A DNA stretch of 64,000 nucleotides from Mizuhopecten yessoensis (GCF_002113885.1 NW_018407563.1:507187-571186), one strand, 5' to 3'. Numbered from the stretch's first letter, positions 2,544 through 35,440 are shown. Program-made: numbers and translations. Notes: generated from the sequence alone by a model not told the origin.

Positions 2544-2910
2544 CTGTTGACAGAAATGGGTTGTACCGGGGGTATATACCATTTTTTTCTCTCTCACAAT
2601 TCCAACCAAAAATAAAATAATTGTTTTTTTAATATTTGTTTTAGTTATCATAAGAATTTGAGTACGTAGTACTTTTAAGAATTAAAGCCTATTACAGGTT
2701 GGTAGTGACATGCTTAGAAAATCAGTTAACAGGAAGGCTAAGAAACAATTTTCAACAATATTATTGTAACATAGAATCAAATATTTGAGTAAAAACAAAA
2801 AACTCAGATCCGTAGTACATAATTTACTACAACATGCATACCATTTTTATAAAGACCTGATGCAAGTCAAGACATAAGTTGTTAAACAATATTTACAGAA
2901 GTGAACCTAC

Positions 2911-3043
2911 ACAAATATGACATCCCCTCGTTTGGAGTAGGCTGGGATGGCACTGGCTATGGTGGCGAAACCGTAAGAGTACAGGATGCTTTCCTCACAA
3001 TCCATAAACTTGGCAAACTTTTCCTCCAGGTCGAGATGTACAT
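2911..3043 (-). CDS. SPTLC1: SPTLC1 exon 6 ([45 protein letters not shown])
   Basis: Near-identical to human [20 protein letters not shown]; AG/GT bounded. Confidence 0.97.
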
Positions 3044-3046
3044 CTG

Positions 3047-4206
3047 TACAAACAAGGTCACACTATCACTGGTTGTCACCTCCATACACTGGTGTATCGA
3101 ACCATGTACATACAAACAATGTCACACTATCACTGGTTGTCACCTCCATACACTGGTGTATCAAACCATGTACATACAAACAATGTCACACTATCACTGG
3201 TTGTCACCTCCATACACTGGTGTATCAAACCATGTACATACAAACAATGTCACACTATCACTGGTTGTCACCTCCATACACTGGTGTATCAAACCATGTA
3301 CATACAAACAATGTCACACTATCACTGGTTGTCACCTCCATACACTGGTGTATCAAACCATGTACATACAAACAATGTCACACTATCACTGGTTGTCACC
3401 TCCATACACTGGTGTATCAAACCATGTACATACAAACAATGTCACACTATCACTGGTTGTCACCTCCATACACTGGTGTATCAAACCATGTACATACAAA
3501 CAATGTCACACTATCACTGGTTGTCACCTCCATACACTGGTGTATCAAACCATGTACATACAAACAATGTCACACTATCACTGGTTGTCACCTCCATACA
3601 CTGGTGTATCAAACCATGTACATACAAACAATGTCACACTATCACTGGTTGTCACCTCCATACACTGGTGTATCAAACCATGTACATACAAACAATGTCA
3701 CACTATCACTGGTTGTCACCTCCATACACTGGTGTATCAAACCATGTACATACAAACAATGTCACACTATCACTGGTTGTCACCTCCATACACTGGTGTA
3801 TCAAACCATGTACATACAAACAATGTCACACTATCACTGGTTGTCACCTCCATACACTGGTGTATCAAACCATGTACATACAAACAATGTCACACTATCA
3901 CTGGTTGTCACCTCCATACACTGGTGTATCAAACCATGTACATACAAACAATGTCACACTATCACTGGTTGTCACCTCCATACACTGGTGTATCAAACCA
4001 TGTACATACAAACAACGTCACACTATCACTGGTTGTCACCTCCATACACTGGTGTATCAAACCATGTACATACAAACAAGGTCACACTATCACTGGTTGT
4101 CACCTCCATACACTGGTGTATCAAACCATGTACATACAAACAATGTCACACTATCACTGGTTGTCACCTCCATAAACTGGTGTATCAAACCATGTACATA
4201 TAAACC
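3047..4206. repeat. 64-bp minisatellite, about 18 near-identical copies, abutting the SPTLC1 exon 6 acceptor
   Basis: Unit TACATACAAACAATGTCACACTATCACTGGTTGTCACCTCCATACACTGGTGTATCAAACCATG; explains the three overlapping plus-strand ORFs. Confidence 0.97.
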
Positions 4207-4255
4207 AATTTAACTTTAAAGGGTAAGTTTTGATCAACAACTCTAGTGTACTAAT

Positions 4256-4733: not shown

Positions 4734-5836
4734 ACAAGAGATCCCAGAGAGATCTTGGCGCCCACCTTTGTACCATCTTCATTAGTTCTTTGTCAGTTCG
4801 ATCTTTTCTCTTCTTTCCTCTAATCTGTTTGATCGAGTCATGTTAACAGTAAATGCACCTTGAGGTAACTTTTGATCTAAACTTAATACTGATGTGTATG
4901 AAAGCCAACCTTCAAAGTGAGTTTGTCATTTCACATATTTACTAGTACAGTACTTAATGTGAAAGAAATAGAATCGATCATTGCAATATGAGAAAGATCT
5001 GTTTAGTTCTTCTTTTAATCCATTTTGTTTTTATGATCAGTCTCAAAATATAACATACACAACGAGGGATCAAGGGGAACCTACATTTAAAATTTGAGAA
5101 AGANNNNNNNNNNNNNNNNNNNNNNNNNNNNNNNNNNNNNNNNNNNNNNNNNNNNNNNNNNNNNNNNNNNNNNNNNNNNNNNNNNNNNNNNNNNNNNNNN
5201 NNNNNNNNNNNNNNNNNNNNNNNNNNNNNNNNNNNNNNNNNNNNNNNNNNNNNNNNNNNNNNNNNNNNNNNNNNNNNNNNNNNNNNNNNNNNNNNNNNNN
5301 NNNNNNNNNNNNNNNNNNNNNNNNNNNNNNNNNNNNNNNNNNNNNNNNNNNNNNNNNNNNNNNNNNNNNNNNNNNNNNNNNNNNNNNNNNNNNNNNNNNN
5401 NNNNNNNNNNNNNNNNNNNNNNNNNNNNNNNNNNNNNNNNNNNNNNNNNNNNNNNNNNNNNNNNNNNNNNNNNNNNNNNNNNNNNNNNNNNNNNNNNNNN
5501 NNNNNNNNNNNNNNNNNNNNNNNNNNNNNNNNNNNNNNNNNNNNNNNNNNNNNNNNNNNNNNNNNNNNNNNNNNNNNGTACTTCTTGAGAAATAGCGATA
5601 ACAAACTTTCAATATCAAAATCCAAGATGGCTGCCTGTCGGCCATGTTGTTTATCCGATCAGTCTCAAAAGTTGCCCTGCACAGCGAAGGACCAAGGGGA
5701 ACCTACATATAAAATTTGAGAAAGATCCCTCTTGTACTTCTTGAGAAATAGCGATAACAAGAATTGTTTACGGATGGACGACGGACAACGGACGCAGCGT
5801 GATTTGAATAGCCCACCATCAGATGATGGTGGGCTA
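4734..5836 (+). mobile_element. Helentron-associated non-autonomous element (HINE/DINE-1-like), family A, spanning an N gap
   Basis: ACAAGAGATCCCAGAGAGATCTTGG start, internal 156-bp unit, terminal hairpin TAGCCCACCATCA/TGATGGTGGGCTA followed by an A run; inverted homologue at 30361-32342. Confidence 0.75.
5104..5577. other. Assembly gap (474 N)
   Basis: N run. Confidence 1.
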
Positions 5837-5910
5837 AAAAACCAATTCAATATTTCTACCTCTCAGCTGATGTGTTCAGCAAATAAACCCGAGTACGAGA
5901 CCAGCCTTAC

Positions 5911-5983
5911 CCATTGTTCCATAGAAACCTCTCGGACCACAAGATCCAACACCATACTTTCTCATAGTCTTGACTGCAGCATC
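5911..5983 (-). CDS. SPTLC1: SPTLC1 exon 5 ([24 protein letters not shown])
   Basis: [15 protein letters not shown] signature, including the Cys equivalent to human C133. Confidence 0.97.
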
Positions 5984-6160
5984 CTACAACAAAAACAATT
6001 TAAGAATATCAATTCTTGGACAAACGACAGATCATTTATCAAGAAGTTGAAATTACATTCCGAGATCGTCTTCAGAAAGCACATAAAGTGGCTGCTTTCT
6101 TGTCGGTAATCTCTTAATATTGGTTCTGTTAACATGATGAAATATCAGCAGCAGAGCATT

Positions 6161-6268
6161 TAACAGTGGTCTTAACACAGTTGGGTCTCATAACAGAAGT
6201 GGTCTTAACACAGTTGGGTCTCATAACAGAAGTGGTCTTAACACAGTTGGGTCTCATAACAGTGGTCA
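6161..6268. repeat. About 33-bp tandem repeat, 3 copies
   Basis: AACAGAAGTGGTCTTAACACAGTTGGGTCTCAT. Confidence 0.8.
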
Positions 6269-6589
6269 CTCGAGCAGGTCTTACAACAAACTGGAAGTAT
6301 TTTAAGCAAGCAAAGTGCCTTTAAAATCTGTCCAAATTTTGTTTGATGTTTCAGGCCATTCATGAATGTCCTAACCTCATTTCATTATTGATAGAGATTT
6401 CAATGTAATTATGGATCTTCTTGGTTAATAATACAGCAACATCACCTGGTATTTTACTATACAATATATACTACTGATTATTGTTTGCATAATTTGGTAA
6501 TATTGTACACAGCATAACATTGCTTAAGTATTTTTTAAGGAATTGTTTAACATAAACTTTAAATCTTACTCAATGCATCAATATATCTT

Positions 6590-23007: not shown

Positions 23008-25231
23008 GATACACTTCCATACAGTATTCACATAGTTAACATTGCTTTTCGTTTTTAACACAGTATTTACATGTAACAGGTATCACATTGTAACAACTTA
23101 ACAGAGAGGAGGGGACAAACATAACTGCATCAATAATTAAGTATTCTGGCCTATTTCATAGGCACTCTCTTAAATCTGTCGACTGTACACTAACAAACGG
23201 TTCTACGATGTACGTGTAACGTACTATAAGACCATGGTCAAATATCTAATATTTACTTCAAATATACATGAGTGTGTATTTCAGAAGTTGTCTTGTTGGT
23301 GAGAATTTCAGTTGACATAAACAAATATTATATTATTAACTCATGATCATTCACCCCTGAATTTTCATAATAAACTATTCCAACCTTTGAATTGGAAGAG
23401 TTCAAATGTGTCTTCAGGGGTGGATCATGAGTTAACCTTAGACATGCCAATGTATTGACCACACTGGTTGGTCTACTGTTAATAATTACCGGTATGTAAC
23501 ATAAAACTATAAGAAATAATATTTTAATTTCCACTCAAATTGTTTAACCACCCTTCAATTTATAATGACTGAAATGGAGGGTGCACTAGACAATCAAGGT
23601 AAACAACAGGTACATCATTTTTGTTTAACGCTCAATATTGTTTAAACCTCAGTTTTAATTTATAATTTGTTTTGAAAACTCAACTTTAGAATTCACAATA
23701 TTTTTTAGACTTCAAAAGTAATAAATAATCTATCATTACATATACTGAACAAATACTTAACATATAATGAAATACATTTGAAGTACTTTCAACAAAAACA
23801 TAACAAACAGTAACATGTTGATACATAATTTGAATAAAAATTGGTAAGATCCATTCATTCAATTTTGCATTTTGTCTATAAATCCTCTCAAATTGTTTCC
23901 ATTTAAATCCTAATTTATTTTTAATCATCATCATTTGCAATGCTTTTGTACAAAAATACATATTATTTACTCCGATATTAGAAAAAAAACCTCTCAGCAT
24001 GAATTGCCATGACAAAACTGAAAGTAGACATTCTGTTTTATTTTGTTAATGAATGGATTGAATTTTAGCAGTTTGAAAAACTAAACCGATACATGGATGG
24101 TTATTTGAATTATATAGACATAAATCAAATGCCAAATTGTGCATGTACTTACACATGTAAGCTACAAGGAATTCCAGATTAAGTGGAAAATAAAGAATAA
24201 CAAAACTGAAACTATATAACATTGAACAATTTAACAGATTTTTGTAAAAAAGGATGCTCTGTAATGGGTAAAGTAGAACCATGTTTTTTTTCTAATTTCA
24301 GTCTTCTATATTTAGTCTGGTTTTTATTGTTTAACACCAGACTCTATAACTGAGAGGAATATTGCTACCAGTACGTATCTTCTGTTCAATCTGTAGATAA
24401 CTACTGGGTACCGAGCTGCCACGAGATTACTAAAACTGGAAAATACAGAAATATCAAAAGGGATAAAAGTGTATTTTAAACTACAAAATAGTAATATAGT
24501 ACCTTTTAGGTTTGATGAAATTCTGAAACAATCCTAAAACTAAAATTTTGAACTACATCTGAATATTATCAGCAACACAAGGGGGAGAAACACTAATAAA
24601 ATTTACTGTAGTAGACAAAATTTAACTATTCCTGTGACATAGCCCCGATCAGGTAGCTGTATATTTATAAATATCACATGTACAGCGCATATCACGTTTA
24701 CTGTATAGTGCCACTTAATTACTTATTCAACATGGTCTGGATAATACTTGCAAAAATCATTGGTTTTTATACAGATGAATTTAATAAAAAAAAATACTGA
24801 AATGAAATTAGGAAGTTAGAAACAGCAACAATATGTTGATAAATAACTTCTACTATACCGGGTAAATGTTGTCTGCATCATGCATTCAAAAAATGTAACA
24901 TGCAAAAATGAAGTACATGCATACGGAAGGAAAAACCCTGCATTGACCTTAACATAATTACTTGTGGCCTGCATGTATCGATACCTACATGTAGTATACA
25001 AAATTATTTCACAAATCATTGACAAGACTATTGCAAATAAACGTCCAGTCAGACTGGATCCGTGACAACGTAACATTTATGATCACATGCATCAAACAAA
25101 AAATTTCTCTCGCAACCTTAACTCATTTACCCCTGAAGTTTCATATTGAACTATTCCAACCTTTGAACAGGGAGAGTTCAAATGTGACTTCAGGGGTGAA
25201 TGATGTTTAGTTGTGAGAAAAAATGGTTACT

Positions 25232-27760
25232 TTACAATATATCTTTAACATGAGAATCTGTGTCATCTGTCACAGTGTTCGAATAGATTAGAACGTCTAG
25301 CAAATATTCAAGATTGTCAAAACTCTTGAAATACACACCGCCTAAATTTGCATTAGGCAACATCCATGTTAGCAGTGCATTGAGTCTATGTTTGAGGGCT
25401 TTTAAACAAATTTTTGGTTTCCTACAGGTTTCAACATATGATTCATATATCTTAATTGTTTTTGTCTGTCCCTTAGCTGTTTCTGACTGAACACACGGCA
25501 AAGACAAGTCCTGCTGACAGTCTGTCCCTGATAAAGTTGCGGCTCCGCTGGCTGCCCCATCAGCATCACCTAAAGGTAGATCATTGTCACAGGGTTTGCT
25601 GTCTGGCTGGGAGGCCTGAGATTCTGCTTTGTGAAGGAAACTGTACTTGGACTCCGGTTTACCAAATAGAGGCGAGTCTGCACCCCCTGTCCAATCAAAG
25701 GGCGAGCTGCTGGACAATCTGCTTGCTTCTGAAATGTCTGAATAGGCAGGTAGATGTATAGGCTGATGAGAATTGATGCTGGTAAACGAGGTCAGTTTGT
25801 TTTCATTTTCCTCCAATTCCTCACAACTAAAATCATGTATATCATGGTCACTCTCATTACTATCATCCGAGTCTTCATTCCTGTTAGAATTTAGAAACTC
25901 TTGAAAAGATCCCTGAAATTTATCTTTAACATTTGATAATTCTGGGGTCTTTCTTTCACTAGTTTGCCTCAAAAGCACACTTGGCCCAGTTTTATGATTA
26001 GTATTGCACTTTGAATTACATATGTCCCCTAAATCAGTATTTGGCCCCTGTTGATTTAAAAGTTCGGGACAACAATATCCCCCATCCCTGACATCATGAT
26101 CCTTGATCATGAGAATACCTGAATCTCCTTCTGAAAAAGCACTACTGCAATTTTTCAAACCATAATCACTGCTGTCTGATTTTTCTAAAGACTTTGGTGG
26201 ATCTGACTCCAAAAGAATTGAATTAGCCCCTAGATCTAATGTACATTTTTGTTGCTGATTATTTCTGGTCTTTCCCAAAAACGCTAAAAAGTCTTCAGAA
26301 TAACTAGGGCCCTTTGAGACAGATTCACCTTCGTCTTGTGTCTTGTCATCGGCACTGTAATCATCAAGTACCGGCATGTCATCAGAATCTTTGTCTGCAA
26401 AGAAAAACTCATCAGGTTTTTCCAGACTAGGATATTCCGACAGGTCCACAGGGTCGGTGCCACTATCAGAGTATGTCGCAACTGACTTGACGTCATCTTT
26501 CTCATCCTCCAGATGGGCAATGTCAAAAGGTTCTGGCGTCTGTAGGATGTCCACCACTTGATCTATGAGCAAATCAACTTTCTCACTGTCTGGATTCATC
26601 GCACGAATGAAATCCTGGCATTGAGGAAATATGCTGCAGAATAATGTCACAACTTTGTTTCTTAGAGACACAAGTTGAACCATGTCCCGAATGAAATGTT
26701 TGTGTTCTTTTGACAGACTGTGTTTACGTGAATGTCCACTGTGATGTTTTTGCCTCTTTCCATGAATGGAATGAGGTGATGTCCCTACACAGCACGGACA
26801 CATGCTAATTCGAACTTTCCGTGATCGTTTCTTTCGCGAGGAATGTGATGGGCTCTTGTGTGAGGACAGATGCATGGGTGCATCCTGTACCGAGGTGGGT
26901 TCTGGAGTGGTGGACAGGAAGGACATAAATTGCTGCTGCCAGTTGATGGGGGAGACGGATGACCTGGACGATGATCGTTGATTAACTTTACATGGTGATG
27001 GCACACTAGAGAGCTGCTCAGCCATGGTAACGTCCACAGAAAGAGGTTTTCTCTTGTCTAGGCACTCTTCCGGATCAAAGGCATTGGAGACATGATTTAT
27101 ATTATCTTGACTGACCGAGTCTTCCTCATCTACAACACTCTCCTCCTCATCCAGAGACACCACATCAATGATGCTTTCTTCTATATCCCTGACAGGTGTA
27201 CCATCATTCCTGGTGGGACATCCACATCCACTCGCTAAACCAAGGTTGTTGTTCTGTTCTGGATGCAAGATACACTTGTCACAGTCATTCATGTTGTTAA
27301 ATTTGGGCCCTTCGGTACCCGACCCTTGACCTTGCTTTGGACATCTTTGGAGATAGCTATTCTGTATCACAGCACTTTCTGGTGAACCACAACTATTACT
27401 ACTGTTAAATGGAGAATTTCCGTTGCCTCTGTTTCCTGATAACTCACTCCCAATCTCTGAAATAGGAAATTCTGAACACACATTGGTGTGTGATAGACTA
27501 GAAGTGACCAACTGAGATAAAGTGAAAGTTTCGTCTTCCATTCGGGTTGAGCTACTAAAAGTCTCATGTGATTGCATTCTGCTGACTTGCTGCCTTTGAA
27601 GTTTGAACTTTGTGTTAACAGTTTCGGGGTCGAGAACATGTTGTAATGATGGTAGGCATTTCTTTCTTACGCCAAATCTTTGTTTTCTGTATTTTTTCAG
27701 CACCATTTTCTTAGCACAAAGATACTGATGACCTGTCTTCGCCATTTTCTTTTGGTTCAT
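25232..27760 (-). CDS. Uncharacterised 842-aa, largely disordered, probably nuclear protein with two MORC3-C-terminal-like helical modules
   Basis: 2.5-kb uninterrupted ORF in AT-rich DNA, preceded by a splice acceptor (tctttcag|27910) and in-frame upstream stops; basic NLS-like stretches; no TE motifs. Confidence 0.88.
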   Translation of the reverse strand: MNQKKMAKTGHQYLCAKKMVLKKYRKQRFGVRKKCLPSLQHVLDPETVNTKFKLQRQQVSRMQSHETFSSSTRMEDETFTLSQLVTSSLSHTNVCSEFPISEIGSELSGNRGNGNSPFNSSNSCGSPESAVIQNSYLQRCPKQGQGSGTEGPKFNNMNDCDKCILHPEQNNNLGLASGCGCPTRNDGTPVRDIEESIIDVVSLDEEESVVDEEDSVSQDNINHVSNAFDPEECLDKRKPLSVDVTMAEQLSSVPSPCKVNQRSSSRSSVSPINWQQQFMSFLSTTPEPTSVQDAPMHLSSHKSPSHSSRKKRSRKVRISMCPCCVGTSPHSIHGKRQKHHSGHSRKHSLSKEHKHFIRDMVQLVSLRNKVVTLFCSIFPQCQDFIRAMNPDSEKVDLLIDQVVDILQTPEPFDIAHLEDEKDDVKSVATYSDSGTDPVDLSEYPSLEKPDEFFFADKDSDDMPVLDDYSADDKTQDEGESVSKGPSYSEDFLAFLGKTRNNQQQKCTLDLGANSILLESDPPKSLEKSDSSDYGLKNCSSAFSEGDSGILMIKDHDVRDGGYCCPELLNQQGPNTDLGDICNSKCNTNHKTGPSVLLRQTSERKTPELSNVKDKFQGSFQEFLNSNRNEDSDDSNESDHDIHDFSCEELEENENKLTSFTSINSHQPIHLPAYSDISEASRLSSSSPFDWTGGADSPLFGKPESKYSFLHKAESQASQPDSKPCDNDLPLGDADGAASGAATLSGTDCQQDLSLPCVQSETAKGQTKTIKIYESYVETCRKPKICLKALKHRLNALLTWMLPNANLGGVYFKSFDNLEYLLDVLIYSNTVTDDTDSHVKDIL

Positions 27761-29686
27761 GACTAGATTTATTGGTAGCTTATGTTTTTCTGTAAAATCT
27801 CACTAAATCCCATGCTCAGCTAAAGCCAGGTACATTCATTACGTGAGCAGATTATTATCTAGGTCAACATAACAATGGTCTGGTGTCATCTGCCAACTGA
27901 CGATATATATCTGAAAGAAAAAAGATGAAAAATCTTTGTAAAATTTACTTCCATTATTTGTATACAAATATACAAATCATAGTTTAGTATTAAATACCAG
28001 TAAAAAAGTAATATTGGTCTGGTCTTTATGAGACCGCCGGCTCAGGTGTCTCTCTCAAGTCTAGTGATAAGGAAACATATAAAAAGTATGTTGCTAGATT
28101 GTGCATACATAGACGGGCATACAGTAATGGAGTTAATTTGTGGAGAGATTTTTCGACAGTCTATCACAGGGGCATGCACCTTTTGTATTGGGAAAAGTTT
28201 GCTGTGTTTTCACAGAAATGGGAAAATATGTATATTTCATAACATAATACATGAAAATCAGAACATTTGTACATACAATATTTATAAAACTCAAATTGTT
28301 TTGTTCTTGTTCAAATAAATTATATTGATGATCATAACACTGATTTTTTTTTAATTTGGGAAAAAAATACAGTTTAAATTCTCTAGAGGAAGGGCCTTTG
28401 AGTCCAAAAGCTGTACATGTGACCCCTAAAATCACTGTTGTGTGATGCCTGTGTGTAAAAGTGGGGCAATTCAATAGACAAAAAATGTGTTTTAATCTTA
28501 AGGTAATAATTCAGTTTCAATTAAAAGTTAAAATACTACTGCAGACTAGTACTACTCTAGTTCTGTGATGGTACAGATAAAATTACCCTACATACAAATT
28601 ATGACTGCTCCATCATTTTTCACCAGACTATTACATTTGTGTTTGTGTATATGGAAGCTATATAATTTGTCCAAAGCAAGAGCCTCCTCGGACTCACCCG
28701 GGTATTTAATAGATTCCATGCTTGTAGACATTGCTACCTACTAGGAGATTATATAACCTGTTGGTTCCTTATATATGTGAAAGAAGAAGAAATGAAGCAA
28801 GCCTGGTATGAATCACACCAGAATTATTTTCGCATTTCTTGTGTGCACATAGTTCACATCTACACACAGGTTTGTAATAAAACCTATCTTTGTTCATAAA
28901 CTGTTTGCCTAAGATGTGTTAAAATTATCAAGTTTATGTAGCGAAGGCAATTGATATATGAATTGACTGCAATGATGGAAACTTCATCTCTCTTTCGATT
29001 AGGTCAAATGTTTAAGTATGGATGTCAGGACCCAATATGGAATTACTTGATTTGGTCGTGAAGGCCATATTTAGAACCGGATAGTTGAAATAACATCAAG
29101 CGTGACTTTGTCATGTCATGGGGCATTGGGGGTTGTTTCTTATTTTTTCAAGACAGACATGGCTAATTTCGTGAATGATTTATTTTAATACAGTAAGGAC
29201 CTGACATTTGTTATTTCAACAATCATGCACTATTTTGATAACATTATGCTATATATGAGGTGCTAATTATATGTAAACTTACAGATGGAACACTTTTGAA
29301 TTAGCTCCATTAACTGGAATAGGACCAATTTGTAGCTCTGCCGATGCAATACCTATAAAAATTGTCTCATCATCAGGAGCTTCGTTATATTGCAGCTAAT
29401 GTAGAATCCACTCCTTTTACACATCTAATTATTGAGTATTGTAAGTGAACTTGACCAGAATTGAACTATTATACAATATATAGACTAGTACTTATGCATT
29501 GTATATATGACGTTTTAGACTGGTTAACAGGGTTATCTAATAACGCATTAAGGTGCTGGCTATAAACTGAACTGTACTAAATAGGCCTTGTATGATCTTG
29601 AACTGATCGTCTGACATGACACTTTCGTATGCTGCTCGCTTACTATGGTTACACGTAACTGCAGAAAATGAAGCAGAAATGCCTAC

Positions 29687-32493: not shown

Positions 32494-35440
32494 CTTCTTC
32501 TTCTTCTTCACAATCATGTGCATCATTCATAAGAATATTGTCGCACAGTTTGCGCTTAGCTTGATGTAAAAACTATCCACGATAGCCAATGTACAATTAA
32601 AACGAGTTAAAAACAGATCTATCATCTTCTGTCTTGTTGAGAGTGGATGTCAGCGGGATCTTGCTGATGGTGCTGTCACAACTGACGATGGTAGTTGATT
32701 CATTGTCCTCACTGCAGTTGGAAAAAATGAATGTTGGTACGTCTGTGTTCTTGATGTAGGTTGGACGTAACGGTTGTCGTGTCCTCTGGTCCTTGCTGTT
32801 GCCTGTTGATGCAGGCAGAAGGTATGGTTCTGGGGGGATGTCGATAGGGCTGTGGACGATTTTAAACAGCATCACCTGCTAAGCCTGAATTCTCCGCTCC
32901 TGCAGGGTGTGCCAGCTGAGTGTCTGCAGCATGGTTGTAACACGGCTGTATTTGCTGAAATCGCCCTGCATAGCATACCTGGCTGCCTTTCGCTGGACCT
33001 GTTCTAGCTTGCTGATGTTGGAATGAGTATGTGGACTCCAGATGACAGATCCATACTCGATGATAGGGCGTTCCAAGTTGGTGTAGCAGGCCGCCTTCCC
33101 ATCAGCTGGGCATTTTTTCAGTGTCCTCTGCACGAAAGCGTTGGTGGAAGTGGCTTTCTTGCTGGCAGATGCGATGTGTTTGTTCCAAGAGAGGTTATTT
33201 TGGAGGTGGATTCCTTAATACTTGGCCGACGGGACTGTCTCTAAATCTTGACCGTGGATGGAATAGGTCGTGACCAAGGGATTCCTCTTTCTGGTTATCC
33301 GGATGGCTTCACATTTCTCTGGGTTGAAGCTCATCTGCCATCTATCCTCCCATTCCTGTAGTCTGTCCACATCTTGTTGTAGTTGTGCAGAGTCGTCATG
33401 AGTGGAAATAACTCTGTACAACAAGCAGTCATCAGCAAACAAGTGAGGAGTGGATGTTACACATAAGGGTAGATCATTGATGAAGACCAGGAATAATAGA
33501 GGTCCGAGGACAGTTCCTTAAGGGACTCCTGATGTTACTGAATATGCTGATGACTGTTGGCCCTCAAGGATAACCTTCTGAGTACAGTTGGATAGGAAGC
33601 TTTCAGTCCACTTGAGCGTGTTCCCTCGAATACCATAGTAGTGGAGCTTGCGCAGAAGTCTTTGGTGCGGGACCTTGTAGAAAGCCTTCGAGAAGTCGAG
33701 GAGGACTGCATCGACTTGATCACCTTTGTCGAGGCTCCTGGCAATGCCGTCTATGGTCAGGATCAGCTGGCTCTCGCAGGATCTCTTCTTCCTGAATCCA
33801 TGTTGGTAGTCAGATAGGATGCCGTGTTGTTCTAGGTGGTCCATTAGACTGCTGTGGATGATGTGCTCCATCAGCTTACTGCATATTGAAGTCAGTGACA
33901 CCGGTCGATAGTTGCCTGCCTTTGCCTTGTCTCCTTTCTTGAAGATGGGGGTGATATGAGCTTTCTTCCAGTCGTCAGGGACAGTTCCAGCATCTATGGA
34001 AGACTGAAACACTCTGGTGAGCATGGGAGAGATGGAATTGGCACACATCTTGAGTAGCCTTGGTGGGACTTCATCTGGACATGTTGCTTTGCTCCCTATG
34101 ACATTAAGAAGAAGCTTTGTCACTCGTGTCTGACTGATGGTGATAGTTGGGGCATCCCTGACAGTTGATAGTTCTTCCCTGGTGTATGCAGAACAAAACT
34201 GCTGGTTGAGTATCTCAGCTTTCGCTCTGGGCTCACTCACAAGAAGTCCGTCCTTCCTCAGTGGGTATACTCCAGAGGAGTCTGTTCGCTGACTCTTCAT
34301 GTACGTCCACAGCTTTTTGTATGTACCTGTATCAATGTCTAGGAGCTTGTTGACATAGCTGCTGTGAGCTACTCGGCACTCCTTTTGGGCTGCAGACTTC
34401 AGTCTCTTGTAGCGGTGCCAGTCCCTAGTTCTTGCTGAAGTCCTTTCTTTTTTGAATGCGCAATGTTTGCGACGTGATAATTTCTTAACACTGCGCAAAA
34501 TCCATGGTTGATTAAATCTCCCTGAAGTCATCTTAGATGGTACAAGCTCCATGAGTTGGTTGCAGCACAGTTTAAAAGCGGTCCAGGTCTTGTTGACGCT
34601 ATTGTTTGGAGAATAATCCTCAATGAAATCCATGGCAAGTCAATCGGCTGTTTCCTGGATGAGTGTTTCGTTAACTTTGGACCATAGGTAGAACTTATGC
34701 TTGATGGGACGACGATACGGTGCTCGAATGTTGGATTTGGTCATCACAATGTGGTGGTCCCCTAAGCCTGGTATAGGCCTACATAGGTTTATCTGTGATG
34801 GACAGTTCGTGAGGAAGATGTCGAGGATGTTAGCAACCCGAGTTGGAAAATCAACAATCTGTTCTAAGCCACAGTCATTTATGGTCGAGATGAAGAGTTA
34901 AATCCAACTGTTTTGAGTAGGTGTGGGTACAAGTGGACATAGATTCCCAGTTCACGTCAGGTAGGTTGGTGTCCCCTGTGATCCAGATTGTCAAATTGGG
35001 GTTGGAACAGACAAATTCCTCTATGGTCTTAAACATGTTGGTTGCATAATCAATGTTGTTGTCGGTAGGTCTGTACAATGCCAAGATCGCCAGTTTGTTT
35101 ACTTTGTTGTAGGTTATACTTATCGCCACGGATTCTGTCCCATGGTCATCTATAGTAATGTTACTACAAGGTATGGTCATCCTAGCAGCTATAAGTACCC
35201 CGCCATGACCAGATGGACGATCTCTTCTGGCAATAATGTGATGGCTACATGGGAGGAGTTCTGAGTATGTTACTCTTCAGCCATGTTTCAGTCCCAACGA
35301 CAATGTCTGGGTCCGAGCTGTCGATTAGGTTACCCAGGGCTTCCTTCTTGTTACATATGCTCTGGAAGTTTATTGTCAGTACTCCAGGGTTGTACTTAGG
35401 CTGGGGCGTCTCCCTGTTCCAATAGGAGAAGAACTGAATG
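32494..35440 (-). mobile_element. Degenerate CR1/L2-group LINE (APE endonuclease plus reverse transcriptase)
   Basis: DIVVGTETWL, ITGDTNLPDVNW, ILDIFLTN, GLGDHH; NYRPVSLTS, QHGFRKKRSCESQL, LDFSKAF, SGVP*GTVLGP, LFADD; stops and frameshifts; (GAA)n tail. Confidence 0.93.

Follow-up and report, generated by a model that had tools for sequence, protein, structure and literature searches.

MORC ATPases compact chromatin and silence transposons. To our knowledge, the way in which their C-terminal ends assemble is poorly defined. MORC C-terminal coiled coils have been described as a constitutive dimerisation site (PMC8627505), and MORC3 combines a SUMO-interaction motif (SIM) with a SUMOylated C-terminal coiled coil (bioRxiv 10.1101/2025.03.05.641591). 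In Pfam and in the PDB, as searched here, the extreme MORC tail is not described. We analysed a 64,000-nucleotide (nt) stretch of the genome of the scallop Mizuhopecten yessoensis (GCF_002113885.1 NW_018407563.1:507187-571186, hereafter the window), in which positions 25232-27760 encode a protein of 842 amino acids (aa). An earlier note on this DNA had described the protein as a lineage-specific orphan with two modules resembling the C-terminus of MORC3, and as a candidate MORC adaptor or decoy. The explanation we favour, with a probability of roughly 60%, is that the gene is real and belongs to a mollusc-wide family, that its two modules form a split domain homologous to the MORC tail, and that this domain is a nuclear assembly or docking bundle anchoring a disordered scaffold.

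A mollusc family with two homologous modules

The scallop open reading frame (ORF) is a real, intronless protein-coding gene. Its main parts, with confidence given as the predicted local distance difference test score (pLDDT) of AlphaFold2, are the following:

25232-27760, minus strand: complete 842-aa ORF (P0001) in one exon, with its stop codon at 25232-25234
26528-26716, minus strand: module 1 (block 1), aa349-411, putative first helix-loop-helix half of the split domain, homologous to module 2 (alignments A2/A5; pLDDT 72-88)
25466-26527, minus strand: disordered spacer of ~354-356 aa with DDMPVL and SEGDSGI motifs (pLDDT <50)
25268-25465, minus strand: module 2 (block 2), aa766-831, a C-x5-C followed by the putative second helix-loop-helix, the MORC-tail-like half (alignments A3/A4; pLDDT 70-86)

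The protein is no orphan, and neither is it restricted to scallops. A word search returned 21 relatives, among which the Pecten, Ylistrum and Argopecten orthologues share 68-76% identity over 99-100% of the length and those from oysters (Saccostrea, Ostrea) and mussels (Mytilus) share 32-36%. When profile A1 was run against 1.84 billion representatives, 59 proteins matched at E <1e-3, and the named matches are all molluscs (Potamilus, Pomacea, the chiton Liolophura, Patella, Gigantopelta, the cephalopod Argonauta, Mya, Dreissena and Mercenaria). Named members thus span six bivalve lineages, including scallops, oysters, mussels, clams and unionids, together with gastropods, a cephalopod and a chiton. 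Many of the relatives derive from short assemblies that Logan provides for public runs, and one cluster holds 747 member sequences; if the source runs are RNA sequencing, this would point to transcription of family members. None of the 15 family members scanned contains a Pfam domain. Judged by sequence similarity, the 842-aa protein belongs to an undescribed family that is found across molluscs and is currently without a name.

In the scallop protein module 1 (aa349-411) is followed by module 2 (aa766-831 of 842) close to the C-terminus, and this order is kept in every one of the 59 proteins that carries block 2, the entries lacking it being fragments and C-terminally truncated sequences. What varies is the spacer between the modules. 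In many members it measures 16-30 aa and both modules lie at the C-terminus; gastropods and cephalopods have 24-87 aa, and the pteriomorph bivalves (scallops, oysters, mussels) have 270-400 aa. The heterodont clam orthologues (P0029-P0049; Mya, Dreissena, Mercenaria) and the unionid one (P0023, Potamilus) are 1300-2200 aa long, with 200-430 extra residues beyond module 2; two of these heterodont and unionid sequences bear the UniRef label 'C2H2-type domain-containing', for which Pfam finds nothing.

The earlier note had seen one pattern in both blocks, placed at aa361-406 (nt 26680-26543) and aa785-828 (nt 25408-25277), positions that convert correctly. The likeness is beyond chance. Compared with bivalve-only profiles, block 1 and block 2 resemble each other weakly (hhalign probability 8.5%, P 0.004), but they are much more alike in distant members, whose block 2 is matched by the block-1 hidden Markov model (independent E-value 3e-6). 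Aligning 41 block-1 modules (A5) with 41 block-2 modules (A4) gives an hhalign probability of 97.8% (E 1.3e-12, 42 columns) and a score of 50.1, whereas reversed or column-shuffled alignments score at most 12.7. These comparisons indicate that block 1 and block 2 are genuine, homologous copies of one module, a helix-loop-helix of ~47 aa with the consensus h.L..LR.KV..L...L.P.L......VD.L...VI.

With AlphaFold2 and the orthologue alignment, confident helices (pLDDT 70-88) are limited to aa351-407 and aa782-832. The claim that these are the only two clearly helical blocks is therefore slightly overstated, as helices are also predicted with lower confidence at aa5-29, 274-282 and 489-501; the remainder of the chain has pLDDT <50. 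Scanned against Pfam at E up to 10, the 842-aa protein gave a chance POLQ_helical match as its sole hit, a PDB sequence search gave nothing meaningful, and an ESM Atlas feature search with the whole protein and with the MORC tail exon described below gave nothing usable. On these models the protein is probably a long disordered chain with short conserved motifs and one folded unit.

In a homologue with adjacent modules (P0072:572-702, modelled with alignment A7), AlphaFold2 predicts a compact four-helix domain with a mean pLDDT of 86.2 and a predicted template modelling score (pTM) of 0.79. This domain has no Pfam match, a word search with it returns only itself, and Foldseek and VIA-align searches of the PDB with the tandem and full-length scallop models found no convincing fold match. 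The best PDB analogue of both is the helical sub-domain of a LonA N-terminal fragment (7cra_A 113-210), with Z 5.4 for the tandem model and Z 6.1 for the full-length scallop model, where 85 aligned residues span model residues 351-834. Over the 85-86 residues that the two matches cover, the root-mean-square deviation (rmsd) is 4.2-4.9 Å, but identity is 6-10% and the Z values are far below a meaningful level for helical bundles, so that the likeness is one of common helix arrangement and is no evidence of kinship or function. The DAXX four-helix bundle was also considered as a fold relative and was discarded because its Z of ~3.4-3.5 in both lists is tied with dozens of unrelated bundles. Because the scallop and tandem models share the same best analogue over the same range, we read the two distant scallop blocks as packed in the same arrangement. 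Both modules together are thus predicted to form one compact four-helix domain, the halves still packing despite the scallop spacer, and the two copies most likely pack on each other rather than acting as two free MORC-binding sites.

Relation to MORC tails in the scallop genome

The sequence comparison with MORC covers only this scallop genome's own MORC genes. Searches with Morc6_S5 and zf-CW located four true MORC loci, where both domains were easily detected. In the 842-aa protein the Pfam scan finds none of the MORC hallmark domains, HATPase_c_3, Morc6_S5 and the CW-type zinc finger all being absent. From the empty Pfam and PDB sequence searches we therefore conclude that the protein is without GHKL, S5 and CW domains, in line with the earlier claim that it has no ATPase or CW domain. 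What it has in common with MORC is the C-terminal tail module that in MORC comes after the coiled coil.

When the genome was searched with the narrow bivalve-only profiles A2 and A3, no second locus was found, and the broad block-1 profile A5 matched this gene only. The broadened block-2 profile A4, run over 988 Mb, gave three matches, namely this gene, the C-terminus of a C2H2 frame on contig C5201 (E 6e-6), and C5451:114490-114606 on the minus strand (E 0.235). The last match sits in a 154-aa frame terminated by a stop, on the strand that also carries a zf-CW exon (121470-121583) and Morc6_S5 exons (124222-126302), 7 kb downstream of these; it carries weight because of this position. When the 80 kb on the downstream side of each of the four MORC loci was cut into six-frame pieces, it was the only clear match (E 1.2e-5); the MORC exons were searched one by one. 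In two other scallop MORC paralogues the end consists of a long coiled coil and then the same hairpin in a shorter form. With the four scallop MORC tails aligned (A6), comparison with the block-2 family A4 gives an hhalign probability of 96.2% (E 2.4e-9) and a score of 36.7, as against 8-13.5 for reversed or shuffled alignments. An ESM Atlas shape search with the tandem model ranked first a chordate 'MORC3-like' cluster with HATPase_c_3, Morc6_S5 and zf-CW (58 residues, rmsd 2.5 Å). Collectively these results bear out the likeness of the blocks to MORC tails and support homology between the module and the final ~40 aa of scallop MORC proteins, which have the order GHKL, S5, CW and coiled coil.

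The 842-aa protein and the MORC3/4-type tails of the scallop paralogues on C5451 and C4757 share a terminal helix-loop-helix of ~40 aa in the same register (L..L.R.V..L......D....VE.l...I..N/Q), followed by the stop. The 154-aa MORC terminal frame on C5451 also contains an acidic SIM-like stretch, as does the 842-aa protein. They differ in that MORC has a single copy of the module, which comes after the GHKL ATPase, the S5 domain, the CW finger and a long coiled coil. The 842-aa protein has two copies per chain, with a longer loop and a conserved proline, and these are flanked by CxCC and C-x5-C cysteines. Downstream of a second MORC locus on C5451, two near-identical MORC terminal exons, each with coiled coil and tail, lie 2.7 kb apart at 24993-25346 and 27667-28113 on the minus strand (L012 894-1247 and 3568-4014), and could represent tandem duplication of a last exon or of a gene end.

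The C2H2 zinc-finger gene on C5201 ends at 159187 on the minus strand, and its last ~50 aa are a single copy of the module, the second-best genome match to the block-2 profile (36 bits) and related to the MORC tails at an hhalign probability of 70%. We think it likely that this C-terminus is homologous to the module. Like the 842-aa protein, it has the module at its C-terminus with cysteines before it; it differs in having one copy, joined to a C2H2 finger and a Gln/His/Pro-rich region. Further upstream the C2H2 frame (C5201:159187-160400, minus strand; L032 ~5188-6400) runs into a gap of Ns flanked by short tandem coding repeats. A '2482-aa open frame' on this contig was rejected as an artefact because of that gap.

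Conserved motifs along the protein and neighbouring sequence

Alignment A1 consists of invariant islands amid divergent low-complexity sequence. These are KKYRKQ, a Ser/Pro-rich segment (aa95-128), EQNNN, WQQQFMSFLS (aa274-283), a basic patch with CPCC (aa309-324), block 1, DDMPVL, SE(A/G)DSGI and block 2. The features upstream of module 1, which include a possible nuclear localisation signal (NLS), are:

27674-27748, minus strand: N-terminal basic helix aa5-29, NLS-like, with the conserved KKYRKQ (predicted helix, pLDDT ~55; K23 and Y24 nearly invariant in A1)
27377-27478, minus strand: Ser/Pro-rich linear motif aa95-128 (C..FPISEIG...NGNSPFNSSNSCGSPE), with 14 invariant columns in 20 pteriomorph orthologues
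27116-27175, minus strand: acidic SUMO-interaction-like motif aa196-215 (IIDVVSLDEEE...), kept in scallops and mussels, not in oysters
26912-26941, minus strand: invariant WQQQFMSFLS short helix aa274-283 (W274, Q275, Q277, F278, M279, S280 and F281 invariant; predicted helix 274-282)
26789-26836, minus strand: basic patch and CPCC cysteine cluster aa309-324, candidate NLS and zinc ligands (R312, S313, R314, C321, C323 and C324 invariant)

The Ser/Pro-rich motif was not found beyond scallops, oysters and mussels, and a SUMO-interaction function of aa196-215 is suggested by the motif alone. Of the 59 family members, 48 have a CxCC with a basic patch 22-59 aa (mostly 22-47) before block 1, and in nearly all members block 2 begins with a C-x5-C. 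The scallop protein follows this pattern with RKKRSRKVR..CPCC at aa309-324 and CRKPKIC at aa779-785, so that its conserved cysteines are C321, C323, C324, C779 and C785, to which a nearly invariant H330 can be added. These CxCC and C-x5-C cysteines may be zinc ligands.

Several further observations concern the same chain. Mussels and oysters carry an N-terminal F...F..HL that the scallop ORF lacks, and no further coding exon with this motif was found within 5 kb upstream of the ORF. A conserved SE(A/G)DSGI / SDSGIV at window positions 26100-26130 (aa ~548-556) and at the aligned mussel and oyster positions is reminiscent of a phosphodegron of the DSG type; in the long forms from clams the sequence is DSGIE[VI]LSSSS. 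Three [WYF]xxxFxxFL motifs on the minus strand (26912-26941, 26270-26300 and 25880-25910) each overlap a short predicted helix (aa274-282, 489-501 and 619-623), and the first alone is invariant across bivalves. The N-terminal F...F..HL of mussels and oysters is similar to these motifs.

Elsewhere in the window, a 371-aa ORF at 33518-34633 on the minus strand, in a stretch richer in guanine and cytosine just upstream of the gene, contains a reverse-transcriptase domain (RVT_1, E 6e-16) and is probably a retroelement fragment. At 2901-4213 on the plus strand, three overlapping long ORFs in different frames lie in a repetitive stretch with spurious low-complexity Pfam matches (HTH_49, Mann_GBD_bact), which looks like a minisatellite and not a gene.

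Proposed mechanism, alternatives and significance

We propose that the ancestral form is likely to have had adjacent modules in a compact four-helix domain, and that this domain is split in scallops, oysters and mussels by ~270-400 aa of inserted disordered sequence (~354-356 aa in the scallop), despite which its halves would still pack. In MORC, the preceding coiled coil would bring two single tails together, which could then pair into the same kind of bundle; we propose this pairing because of the published coiled-coil dimerisation of MORC C-termini and the SIM and SUMOylated coiled coil of MORC3. The two-module proteins would then be a single-chain version of the MORC tail dimer. Their bundle may be a nuclear assembly or docking surface common to MORC-type chromatin proteins, and would anchor a disordered scaffold that is probably nuclear and carries many linear motifs (NLS-like, SIM-like, Ser/Pro-rich and aromatic).

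Several points weigh against this explanation. The packing of the halves comes from AlphaFold2 models and an indirect structural-match argument, and among solved structures nothing resembles the domain (best Z 5-6). The module is short (~40 aligned columns) and amphipathic, the MORC-tail alignment amounts to two distinct sequence types (effective number of sequences 1.6), the MORC tails match block 1 weakly (hhalign 41%), and three of the four tails lack the conserved proline. The genome-wide E of the MORC match on C5451 is 0.235. Nuclear localisation, zinc binding and the binding partners of the bundle are candidate roles that we infer.

Some of these points would also be expected if generic amphipathic helix-Pro-loop-helix hairpins had converged, in which case the MORC likeness would be analogy and the family an unrelated mollusc-specific scaffold. 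The short aligned length, the tails without proline, the weak genome-wide E and the failure of the narrow bivalve profiles to match MORC all fit such convergence, which we nevertheless consider unlikely. Shuffled and reversed controls stay far below the real score, the match falls on a MORC terminal exon although ~4 loci x 20 kb make up little of a 2 x 988 Mb search space, the independent shape search ranks a chordate MORC3-like cluster first, and the register, with a terminal [VI]I..N and the C-terminal position, is common to both. The blocks might instead be separate helical ligands that each dock on some other folded partner and do not make one domain. The 356-aa scallop spacer suits this idea, as does the module functioning singly in MORC and in the C2H2 gene, but the tandem form is confidently compact (pTM 0.79), the scallop model has both blocks covered by the same structural analogue, and the two blocks co-occur strictly and in fixed order; we give it the lowest standing among the alternatives.

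The proposal that the protein is a MORC adaptor or decoy accepts the homology and differs in how the modules pair. One or both would join a single MORC tail in a mixed bundle, which would either recruit MORC to targets of the disordered regions or cap MORC and so block its tail-mediated assembly. Homologous pairing modules often cross-pair, an acidic SIM-like motif occurs in both the 842-aa protein and the scallop MORC tail exon, and the long bivalve spacer could let the halves open. Both modules always co-occur, however, and by prediction serve as each other's partner inside the same chain; we hold this proposal to be improbable. For blocks 1 and 2 combined with the scallop MORC tail, a complex prediction scored 0.00, a 'no answer' that speaks neither for nor against binding.

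A broader form of our favoured explanation, which we offer as speculative and doubtful, would make the MORC tail an autonomous pairing module, possibly zinc-stapled, and the mollusc protein a single-chain 'tail dimer' on a motif-rich scaffold. It would act as an ATPase-less MORC regulator that tunes MORC assembly, and with it transposon and chromatin silencing, through mixed bundles or a common docking partner.

What appears to be new is a module, absent from Pfam, that MORC tails and a C2H2 protein have in common with a family found throughout molluscs. That family has duplicated it, and in some bivalves the resulting pair is split. Since the module ends scallop MORC ATPases and also forms the folded part of the 842-aa protein, the MORC tail would be an undescribed reusable module. 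It would be a discrete unit that recurs in other nuclear-looking proteins and can be duplicated into what is predicted to be a self-contained four-helix domain. The results offer a structural model, open to testing, of how MORC dimerises through its tails, together with a candidate set of proteins that may have partners in common with MORC, and they annotate a nameless family present in every major mollusc class.
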